Source: Dimorphilus gyrociliatus
Taxonomy: Eukaryota > Animalia > Annelida
Reading direction: 5' to 3'
Length of the DNA stretch: 64,000 nt
Assembly: GCA_904063045.1 (NCBI GenBank)
Contig: CAJFCJ010000006.1
Span: forward strand, 1,651,601-1,715,600
In this document: piece by piece, positions 9,927 to 15,085 of the stretch
How positions within the stretch are numbered: the stretch's first letter is position 1
Layout: each line of letters starts with the position of its first letter
Position numbers and translations under genes: made by a program
Notes under the pieces: model-generated
Databases searched by the model: none
Seen by the model: the letters and a program-made list of their open reading frames with translations, nothing else
Told to the model about the DNA's origin: nothing

Positions 9927-11180
9927 CTAATCAGCCTCTTCGGGAGCATCGATAACCTCCTCGGCAGTCTGTTAAGTAAGTTTGGCATATTAATTGAATT
10001 TATCTGTAAGTATCTGGGATTAATAGTTAGAGCGTAATTTGATTGTTACCTCGTTGTTCATCTCTTCTAACCTTCTTTGCTCGTAAACCTCTTCTGCCTC
10101 TTGTTTTTCCTCTTCGCTATATTCATCTTTATCGAGCCGCTCAAGGCGTCTAAGCGTCACCAAAACTTCCAATCGATAATCGTCTTCGCTCGCAAGCGGG
10201 GTGCTGCTAAGTACAAGAGCACGAATCATAGGTAACGATTGCATTTTCTTCAACTCTTTAATATCTGCGAGTTTTTCGCATTCCCTAGGGAGGAGAAGTC
10301 ATTGAATTAGTTTTTTATTGGTTTACAGTCTAATTTTGTAATAACGAAAAGAGACAGTTTTCTATCATTCAACTTACCTAAAATTGACGTATTGCAAATT
10401 TTTCATACTTTCGGAGAATCCGTCTAAATTCTCAATTGGATTAAATCTTAAGTGTAACGTTGTCAACTGCTCAAGCGTATGCAAACCCTCCAAACTGGTA
10501 ATTTCGTTATGGGCTAAAAATAAATTCCTCAAAGTAGGTAATTCTAGACCAGCAGTTGAAGTTAATTTATTGCCCCGTAATTCTAGAGTATGCAATCTAC
10601 TTAACCCGGTTGCTACCAAGCCAGATATCTTTTCCAACCTATTATCTTGTAGAATTAGGTGTTCCAAATGAGGATGACTGACGCCCTCTAGCGTTTTAAT
10701 TCTATTCTTTGAGAAGGAAGCTACTTGTAAATAGGGACGCTCCTCTAAAGCTGCTGTTGTCAATTTATTATCATCAGCTTTTAATGTTGACAAATGTGTT
10801 AAATTTGACAGGACGGAAATATCTTTCAACTTGTTGTTGCTTATATCAACATATCTTAAATGTATATATGAAGCCAAAATACTGATATCTGTCAACTCCT
10901 TCTCATGTACGTCCAATTTGACGTAAGCGTGAGAAAGGCCATCACCAGTTTTACACAACAGTGATAATCCATTGGATATCATATCATCTGAAAGAATAAT
11001 TTCAGGATCCGGCTCTTCAACCTCTTCCTCCTCTTTCTCTTCTTCCTCTCCCTTCTCTTCCTCTTCGGCCTCTTCTTCACCCGTTTCTTTATCACCCTCC
11101 TCTATATCTTTTTCTTCATCTCCCGCAGTTTCCTCTGCATTTTCAGTTTCATCAAAGTTTTCCTCTTCTTGATCACTCAT
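9927..11180 (-). CDS. LRRC23: Leucine-rich repeat protein 23 (radial-spoke associated); exons 11180-10379, ~10284-10050, 9968-9927
   Basis: Acidic N-terminus, LSLLCKTGDGLSHAYVKLD, tandem SDS22-like LRRs and the LRR cap YRLEVLVTLRRLERLDKDEY. Confidence 0.93.
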
Positions 11181-11370: not shown

Positions 11371-12739
11371 TCACATATCCTCCATAACTGGTAACCAAAA
11401 CGACTGAAAAGAAATGTAACAGATAAGTAAATGTTTGTCACTAATGAGAATATTATTTACAAATATATATATACATAGTATATATATAAATACACAAAAA
11501 TTAAATTATTATTACCATATTTGAACATGCTGAGGCTAATAGCATGTATTTAGGATTAAACTGAACTCTATTGACTGGACCTTTATGTTCAGAGTTGAGT
11601 ATAACAACGCGATGACCAGTTAAGGCATTCCAGCAATGGATTTTTCCATCAGCAGAACCTAGATGAGAATTGCAAATATCAATTATAGCTATAATAGTCT
11701 ATTTGCGTATAAATTAATTACATACCGCTTAAAACGAATTTTGAATCTGGTGTAAACGACGCTTCTAAATTTAATCCTTTATTCTGGATTCCATCAAAGG
11801 TTTGTAGGGGACCGCCTTGATAAGCGTCAATTAAACGTATTACTGTTCCATTTGTAGATATGAGAATCGTTTTTCCGTCGGGGCTAAATTTTAAATTAGT
11901 CCAATCGCATTCACATTCTTGAGGTAGTTTAAATGTGGCGAATGGTCCTTTATCGAAAGATCTCAAATCATATAATTTCACGAATTCTGAGTTAATTCCA
12001 GCCGCGAAGATTAAACCTTCAGGGTCAAAAGCTGCAACAGGACGTCCAGGAAGGTGCATTACACCTTGACAATTTGGTGATCTCAAATCCCATAATCTTA
12101 AAGTTTTATCTAGAGACCCTGAGAGGAATGTATCATCTACTGGAGACATGCTCAGTGTTACTACCCTGAAAATGAATGAATTATTTAAATACGCAATAGA
12201 AATGTAACAAAAATAAATAATTGTTTCAGTGCAATAATATAATACATATATGCTTCAAAGACTAATTGCGATAAGAGAAATAATTGTTACTTCTGATTAT
12301 GTCCGTGAAAGTATCTGATGTATTTATTGTCATGAAGGGAAAGGTATCTAATTGTATCTGGAGTAATAAAAAAGCTGTAATTGAAGAGAATAATAAGAAA
12401 AGGAAAATATTTACCATCAACTTTAGTTGATCCGTGAATTGCTGTATTGGCTGCGTGGGTAAATCGGATCATATCTACACCGTACTTTTTGCTATTAAGT
12501 TGTCTTTTTGGTCTGAAACAGAAAGCATTAGACAGAATCATTGATAAGCTATACACTACTTACTGTCCATTCTGACAATCGTAAATAACAATTTGATCAT
12601 CATCACTACTGCTTATTAAACTAGTACCCTGCAGATCGAAATCCATTGAGTTTATTGGAGCCGAGTTCTCCTTAAAAATTTTCGCGACTCGGAAATTTCG
12701 AATCGTCTGTTCATTTAACTTCAGTTCTTTCGGAAACAT
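11371..12739 (-). CDS. WDR82: WD repeat protein 82 (SET1/COMPASS Swd2), multi-exon
   Basis: Starts [25 protein letters not shown], contains [31 protein letters not shown] and [29 protein letters not shown], and ends FWLPVMEDM. Confidence 0.96.
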
Positions 12740-13182
12740 GGCGATGTTCTGCTATCGAAAACAAGGCAGATATGTTGATAATATAGCAGGTGTCGCGGTA
12801 ATATTACTATTTCTACGAGCGCCGACAATGTTGAACCCAACGAAATTATACGAAAATAATCATATGCCAATTTAGCGGGCGGTCAATAGGCTAGTATTTT
12901 TCTACAAAATACTATTAAAATCCAATAGAAGAATTAAAAATATATATTTGAAAGATATTTTTTGCAAATATTCAATTAGAAAATACTTAATTCGAGCTCA
13001 AGATTCTCTTTGATTAAAATACGAAAATTATAATAGTTTCGCAGTTAATTATTTCGAAAGGCAGTACAGATCTCAATGACGATGTGATGCTTGTAAATTT
13101 AGATTTCTATATTCGACATAGGCATACATGTATTTATAACACAAAAATGACACTAAAATTACAAAGCGATTCAGTCATCTAT

Positions 13183-14006
13183 TTACAAATTGTTTTCAAA
13201 CAGTTCGGTCTTTTTCCTTCTCAAAGTTTTCGAATGCTGGATTTCCTGACTGAAAAAGAAATAAAGTAAAGCCAGATACATTGAAAATTTATTTTTAATG
13301 TTGGTATCTATGAGCACGTACGCTTTACTACCATCTTCTACAGGATCAGTGCATGCGTTCCAAATTTTTTCACGTAAAATAGAAAGACAGTCTGCCTTAT
13401 TGAGAAACTGTTTCCTACTTTTATCAGAAGATATTATCAAATATCCATCCTTTGTTATATTATATTTCTCCTAAAATTATATATCTTTTAATACTTCCAA
13501 ACAGTCGTATATTTAAAATAAACTCACAGTTTTTAGCAAAACTTTTCTTGCTCTTTCAGGAATCCATTCGGCAGATTCCAAATGAAATTTTAATTCAACT
13601 TTTGTGTTTAAAAGTACTACATGCTGTTTTCCCAGACCACTTGACTTTTTAGTATTTATTTGAATTTTATCTGAATGCAGTATATTAATCAAGTGTCGTA
13701 AGCTACAAATTTAATCAAGATTAATTGCTAAATAATTACCTAGAGGTATAAATCCAGAGAATCGGTCATTAGTACTTTTCTGAAAAAGCAAGCATTCGAT
13801 TGAAATGATCCCCTTTTATCACTCGTTATATTTACCTCATACTCAATCGTTTGTAAGAAATCCTGATTGCTATTTGGATAAACATTATCTAATGAGTAAG
13901 CACTTTTGAATGAGCTCTTTGTCACAGTTGTACATAGTTGTCGCCTTAAACAGATGCTATTGAACCGAGAAAGAGCGATAAATGATGATCTTAACATTGA
14001 CGCCAT
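13183..14006 (-). CDS. MRPL58: Mitoribosomal mL62 / ICT1 peptidyl-tRNA hydrolase family, with the GGQ motif replaced by GKQ; exons 14006-13836, 13779-13740, 13670-13528, 13470-13322, ~13249-13183
   Basis: Mitochondrial presequence, FKSAYSLDNVYPNS (human FKSIYSLDKLYPES), FIPLDKIQI, KVELKFHLESAEWI and SRKQFLNKADCL. All junctions are GT-AG and in frame. Confidence 0.9.

Positions 14007-15085
<1,079 letters not shown>

Follow-up and report, generated by a model that had tools for sequence, protein, structure and literature searches.

The annelid Dimorphilus gyrociliatus possesses a gene for the mitoribosomal protein mL62, also designated ICT1 or MRPL58, in which the catalytic GGQ motif reads GKQ. 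Its product is probably a spiralian mL62/ICT1 orthologue, or a lineage-specific copy, that has lost the hydrolase and rescue function and is maintained for a structural role in the large subunit of the mitoribosome (mtLSU). ICT1 has two jobs, one as an integral mitoribosomal protein and the other as a free rescue hydrolase. Which of them is essential was long hard to say; work on human cells, in which the hydrolase activity is reported to be essential, favours the latter (PMC2845271, PMC4814080). A paper from 2025 stated that GGQ is fully conserved in the ICT1 of all eukaryotes (PMC12319706). An earlier note on this DNA had proposed a pseudo-enzyme that persists as a ribosomal protein, and we found support for this proposal in the degenerate catalytic loop and C-terminal tail, in the conserved fold core, predicted presequence and docking motif, and in the expression of spliced transcripts.

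The gene lies on the minus strand of the window, by which we mean the whole stretch of 64,000 nucleotides that was analysed and to which all coordinates refer. The gene model was made from the sequence, its four introns are confirmed by contigs that skip them, and its parts are as follows.

13183–14006, minus strand: ICT1/mL62 coding region from ATG to TAA; five exons, a CDS of 570 nt and a product of 189 aa.
13836–14006, minus strand: exon 1, aa 1–57; encodes a predicted mitochondrial presequence and, after it, the mtLSU-binding motif.
13740–13779, minus strand: exon 2, aa 58–70 and the first base of codon 71; contains the conserved FSGFIPL.
13528–13670, minus strand: exon 3, aa 71–118; RF-1/GGQ domain, first half, with the AEWIPE helix region of the ICT1 type.
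13322–13470, minus strand: exon 4, aa 119–168; GGQ domain, second half, and a linker of reduced length; aligned to residues 125–171 of human ICT1.
13183–13249, minus strand: exon 5, aa 168–189 and TAA; the C-terminal tail, truncated and depleted of basic residues.

The four introns are bounded by GT and AG and measure 56, 69, 57 and 72 nt, sizes that fit the published median intron of 66 bp in this species (PMC7854359). Logan contigs from four public runs were compared with the window over positions 13000–14300; one genomic contig among them may be the source of the assembly. Intron-skipping contigs were obtained from three of the runs (X2, X3 and X4), which belong to two studies (2017 and 2020), and all four exon joints were seen. 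The joint between exons 4 and 5 (13322/13249), which sets the reading frame of the tail, was seen in X2 and X3, with a matching loose end in X4. Over the gene, the comparison of the contigs with the window reported no letter differences, insertions or deletions. GKQ is present in both the DNA and the mature mRNA. An assembly error as its source is ruled out by the same letters in the spliced contigs of three runs from two studies, and RNA editing by the agreement of the DNA with these contigs. The earlier note had held a base-call error to be unlikely and had suggested a check on reads or cDNA; it had also regarded the frame and splice sites as otherwise intact. The contigs agree with it on both points.

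Translation was taken to start at the ATG at 14006, whose context is strong (A at −3 and G at +4), rather than at an upstream in-frame ATG at 14081 (14081–14007, minus strand), which has a weak context and would add 25 residues, including acidic ones. This upstream ATG sits where the contigs of a divergent PCNA-like gene begin, and one X4 contig reaches 14098. Intron 4 (13250–13321, 72 nt) preserves the reading frame and contains no stop codon, and its retention would put 24 mostly hydrophobic residues into the linker. An unspliced contig across it (13220–13351) occurs in X2 at a depth of 32, as against 144 for the spliced form, and may simply be pre-mRNA. The full-length protein of the worm itself was not found when the 113-aa ORF of exon 1 was used to search for an annotated protein, nor among 1.84 billion representatives, where the best match had 62% identity, nor by a profile search in which half of the profile was built from the worm's own exons.

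On its upstream side, the ICT1 gene is arranged head to head with the PCNA-like gene (14194–15085, plus strand), from which it is separated by the following spacer.

14007–14193, no strand: head-to-head spacer of 187 nt from the ICT1 ATG to the PCNA-like ATG, taken from the ORF list and the contig ends.

At 14067–14098 the contigs of the two genes meet or overlap at their ends, and the genes presumably share a very compact bidirectional promoter. Directly downstream of ICT1, a WDR82-like WD-repeat gene (11718–12739, minus strand) was recognized by eye from the ORF translations, as was the next gene, which encodes a leucine-rich-repeat protein with an acidic N-terminus (10374–11180, minus strand). 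In Capitella (L003) and Paralvinella (L002), a gene for a dual-specificity phosphatase (DSPc) lies on the opposite strand just downstream of ICT1. No DSPc gene was found in the 64-kb window; this annelid ICT1–DSPc microsynteny is not kept in D. gyrociliatus and is uninformative for orthology.

The family identity of the protein was examined by several searches. In a phmmer comparison with PDB chains, exon 3 best matched the ICT1/mL62 of mouse, human and pig (E about 1e-6), and ICT1/mL62 was also at the top for the second piece (E about 2e-4). The Pfam RF-1 model gave 17.4 bits for the exon 3 piece and 21.1 bits for the exon 4 piece, both below the cut-off of 35 bits because the exons split the domain. 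When 1.84 billion representatives were searched exhaustively by phmmer with exon 3, 108 matches were obtained, the named ones being mL62/ICT1 of a horseshoe crab, molluscs, Capitella, a sea spider and a bug. Two profile searches added further relatives, all named ones of which are mL62 or ICT1, and blastp with the spliced protein matched Tachypleus mL62 (2e-45, 50% identity). MTRFR was rejected as an identity, given that no MTRFR chain occurred among the PDB matches and that all database relatives are mL62/ICT1. Among the 37 proteins compared in a maximum-likelihood tree, that of D. gyrociliatus fell inside a clade (95/92) of annelids, molluscs, nemerteans and a rotifer, with no finer placement, on an end branch of 1.87 compared with a median of 0.76 (approximately 2.5-fold). 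These sequence comparisons identify the protein as a long-branched spiralian ICT1/mL62 (MRPL58).

Introns occupy the same positions as in the Paralvinella and Capitella ICT1 genes, except for one Paralvinella intron in the loop region. This extra intron lies right after GGQNVNK, and the D. gyrociliatus gene does not have it. Since the ancestral intron positions are kept, the gene is not a retrocopy. No close relative of the protein was found among the retrieved sequences. The best match to exon 3 was a Logan locus (L001:59–321, protein P0001) with 62% identity and an intact GGQ; its exon borders are the same as those of the D. gyrociliatus gene, an intron of approximately 56 nt follows an exon-2-like FSGLVP, and its GC content is 32%. 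No DNA similarity of L001 to the window was found, and L001/P0001 may stem from another small spiralian or represent a paralogue.

The phylogenetic and genomic data bear on an alternative in which the gene is a subfunctionalized duplicate: a canonical GGQ-bearing ICT1 elsewhere in the genome would carry out rescue, and the present copy would be specialized as a ribosomal protein. The role of this gene would be the same as in our preferred explanation, and only the consequence differs. The earlier note had named such a second GGQ paralogue as one possible consequence, the other being a rewired rescue or termination. There is a precedent in Ixodes and other chelicerates, which have an extra GGQ-less ICT1 beside the canonical one (PMC3472500); a GGS variant among our sequences, P0108, groups with chelicerates, and the long branch of the D. 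gyrociliatus protein fits a diverged duplicate. However, the gene has kept its ancestral intron positions and the canonical N-terminal motif of mL62, and gene families in the published genome are on average the smallest among annelids (PMC7854359). The 64-kb window contains one ICT1-like locus, a count that leaves room for a copy elsewhere. We consider a duplicate possible but rather unlikely.

The altered motif lies in a catalytic loop that is changed at several further positions.

13609–13638, minus strand: degenerate catalytic loop, G-L-G-K-Q-H-V-V-L-L compared with G-P-G-G-Q-N/H-V-N-K-V; GKQ occupies 13632–13624.

On the minus strand, positions 13638–13624 read GGT CTG GGA AAA CAG and encode G82, L83, G84, K85 and Q86. 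In the phmmer comparison of exon 3 with the PDB chains, SSGLGKQHVVLLNTK aligned residue for residue with SSGPGGQNVNKVNSK of mouse and human ICT1, which places the lysine on the second glycine. The replacement of GGQ by GKQ in exon 3, from which the earlier note had started, is confirmed by the codons, this alignment and the spliced contigs, and the flanking Pro and Asn that it had reported as lost are indeed replaced (P83L and N89V). The second glycine is invariant in the 216 relatives with full loop context, in which L83, K85, V89 and L90 each have a frequency of 0; V91L is rare among the relatives (about 5–6%). G82, G84, Q86 and V88 are kept, together with the surrounding SSG. Among the 292 retrieved ICT1-family sequences, 289 have GGQ and none has GKQ. 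A survey of the motif in annelids, which the earlier note had called for, found GGQ in Capitella, Paralvinella and Helobdella, and the other carriers include two nemerteans and one rotifer. The exceptions are P0108 and P0111, both with GGS, and P0049, a 63-aa fragment with STQ. With the second glycine and four more loop residues replaced, the D. gyrociliatus protein appears, by its sequence, to lack a GGQ loop that could catalyse hydrolysis at the peptidyl-transferase centre.

The C-terminal tail is likewise affected. MAFFT gave two different alignments of this region, and we used gene structure to decide between them. In D. gyrociliatus, Capitella and Paralvinella alike, the last intron interrupts the codon that lies exactly nine residues ahead of a conserved Leu; because this position is common to the three, L177 was equated with human L188, and the gap-free alignment from MAFFT L-INS-i was rejected in favour of the intron-anchored one. 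Kogure et al. showed that human ICT1 depends on each of four residues, R187, K191, K198 and R201, to hydrolyse peptidyl-tRNA on stalled ribosomes (PMC3950681). Of these, D. gyrociliatus has kept only the equivalent of K191 (K180). Thr stands at the position of R187, where other annelids already have Ile; Asn replaces K198; and the reading frame closes before the R201 position. Other annelids still have three of the required basic residues, of which the early-ending tail has lost two, and neither alignment matches more than one of the four residues needed for rescue in human ICT1. In addition, the conserved Ser195 position is Leu, and the linker is 7 aa shorter than that of Capitella. The short tail noticed earlier (QEIQHSKTLRRKKTELFENNL) is genuine, the exon 4/5 joint being confirmed in the contigs.

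We aligned the protein with 121 non-redundant full-length relatives and obtained 30 columns conserved at 85% or more. The D. gyrociliatus protein differs at 10 of them, namely five in the GGQ loop (P83L, G85K, N89V, K90L and V91L), four in the C-terminal tail and the conservative R98K. Of the 17 such columns that lie outside the loop and tail, it retains 16. The clustering of the changes in the loop and tail gave a Fisher p of 4e-4, to be read as an indication and not as a strict test, since the regions were picked from the literature but after the data had been seen. As judged from this alignment, the damage is localized to the two elements that define rescue activity, and the fold core is conserved.

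Such a distribution would not be expected if the gene were decaying, that is, a transcribed relic without function. The branch of approximately 2.5 times the median length, the loss of motifs essential for the known activity and the truncated C-terminus are compatible with decay; however, neutral decay would not spare the conserved columns outside the loop and tail and the docking motif on so long a branch, and the reading frame is open over five exons with canonical splice sites and spliced RNA in three runs. We therefore regard a relic as very improbable.

The docking motif belongs to the N-terminal part of the protein.

13875–13910, minus strand: YSLDK-type motif FKSAYSLDNVYP, the counterpart of the human mL62 motif that binds uL15m.

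Human mL62 contacts uL15m through its N-terminal YSLDK motif and through Tyr142 and Phe144, its Leu188 touches uL18m and mL38, and its GGQ makes no contact with the mitoribosome (PMC12319706). In D. gyrociliatus, FKSAYSLDNVYP agrees with the published consensus F/Y-K-S-x-Y-S-L-D-K/R-L-Y-P at 10 of 12 positions (PMC12319706); the mismatches are N for K/R, where N is found in 24% of the relatives, and V for L. F140 aligns with human Phe144 and L177 with Leu188, and both hydrophobic contact residues are retained. The first 39 residues include six K/R, no D/E and 12 S/T, a composition as expected of a mitochondrial presequence, which this N-terminus probably is.

The conserved parts are those for permanent binding to the mtLSU, which argues against a newly acquired non-catalytic function at some other place than the ribosomal-protein site, such as that of an A-site binder or regulator. 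GGQ-less relatives of release factors with other or unknown roles exist, for example plant mtRF2b (PMC3472500), but entry into stalled ribosomes requires the tail, which is degenerate in D. gyrociliatus, and we judge such a function to be slightly less probable even than decay. The least credible alternative is a hydrolase still active with a non-canonical GKQ site, for which the retained Gln, first Gly and surrounding SSG could be cited, but changes of either Gly abolish the activity of release factors and leave approximately 1% in the GSQ or AGQ forms of ICT1 (PMC2845271), and four further loop residues and most of the rescue residues of the tail are gone as well.

The structural, hydrolase-dead mL62 that we favour could operate as follows. 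The N-terminal presequence would direct the protein into mitochondria, where, by homology, FKSAYSLDNVYP and the equivalents of Phe144 and Leu188 would attach it to uL15m, uL18m and mL38 at the site used in human mitoribosomes, the base of the central protuberance. The mature protein would be built into the large subunit as a structural brace, with peptidyl-tRNA hydrolysis gone. ICT1 mutants with GSQ or AGQ still assemble into mitoribosomes (PMC2845271). The former catalytic loop, which would have no ribosome contact at this site, has drifted from GPGGQxVNKV to GLGKQHVVLL, and the C-terminal tail, which senses the empty mRNA channel in ArfB and in free ICT1, has degenerated and comes to an early end. 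Hydrolysis of stalled peptidyl-tRNA would then have to pass to another factor, be it MTRFR, mtRF1a or an unseen ICT1 copy. The long branch could in part reflect general relaxation.

Given that the hydrolase of ICT1 is reported to be essential in human cells, a dead copy that is the sole one would need compensation. We rate as about even the chances that this gene is the animal's only ICT1/mL62, catalytically dead, with non-stop rescue left wholly to other factors, MTRFR or mtRF1a for example. In that case ICT1 can persist as a ribosomal protein without its hydrolase role, and the gene would be a natural allele in which the two functions are separated, in exact mirror image to teleost Ict1. It would also be a counter-example to the published statement on GGQ conservation in all eukaryotic ICT1, a natural test that the structural role alone maintains the gene, and a system for finding the substitute rescue factor. 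If a canonical copy exists, D. gyrociliatus would provide a second, independent case of the tick-type split, suggesting that the two functions separate easily.

Comparison with known systems places the protein closest in architecture to mammalian ICT1/mL62 (MRPL58), with which it shares the predicted presequence, the YSLDK-type uL15m motif, the RF-1/GGQ fold with the ICT1-type helix region, and the equivalents of Phe144 and Leu188. Unlike the mammalian protein, it has GKQ, replacements of the loop P, N, K and V, no equivalents of K198 and R201, and an early end. MTRFR/C12orf65 is likewise a mitochondrial protein with only an RF-1 domain; unlike it, the D. gyrociliatus protein has an N-terminal motif of the ICT1 type. 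Bacterial ArfB (YaeJ), a marginal match in the PDB search (E about 0.7), has a homologous GGQ domain and a C-terminal extension, but it is a free rescue factor that needs GGQ and R118, L119, K122, K129 and R132, most equivalents of which are missing in D. gyrociliatus.

The extra ICT1 of chelicerates (ticks and mites; Duarte et al. 2012, PMC3472500) is, like the D. gyrociliatus protein, an expressed member of the ICT1 family without GGQ, and was reported beside a canonical ICT1. The Logan sequences P0108 and P0111, whose nearest relatives are spider and Limulus mL62, are probably this chelicerate protein, and their GGS variant is the closest precedent for the change in D. gyrociliatus. P0108 reads GPGGS, with only the Gln lost, and unlike the D. 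gyrociliatus protein it has kept the loop VN and a full basic tail. In the tree, P0108 groups with arachnids and Limulus, and the D. gyrociliatus protein with spiralians; the loss of GGQ in D. gyrociliatus is therefore independent, and its protein does not share ancestry with the chelicerate paralogue. The 63-aa Logan fragment P0049, an exon-3-type ICT1 ORF with GPSTQ for GPGGQ, may be another independent loss of GGQ or a pseudogene. In teleosts, too, the two functions of ICT1 have come apart naturally within an animal lineage, but as a mirror image: teleost Ict1 has lost the YSLDK docking motif, has kept GGQ and is proposed to act in rescue only (PMC12319706), whereas the D. gyrociliatus protein shows the opposite combination.
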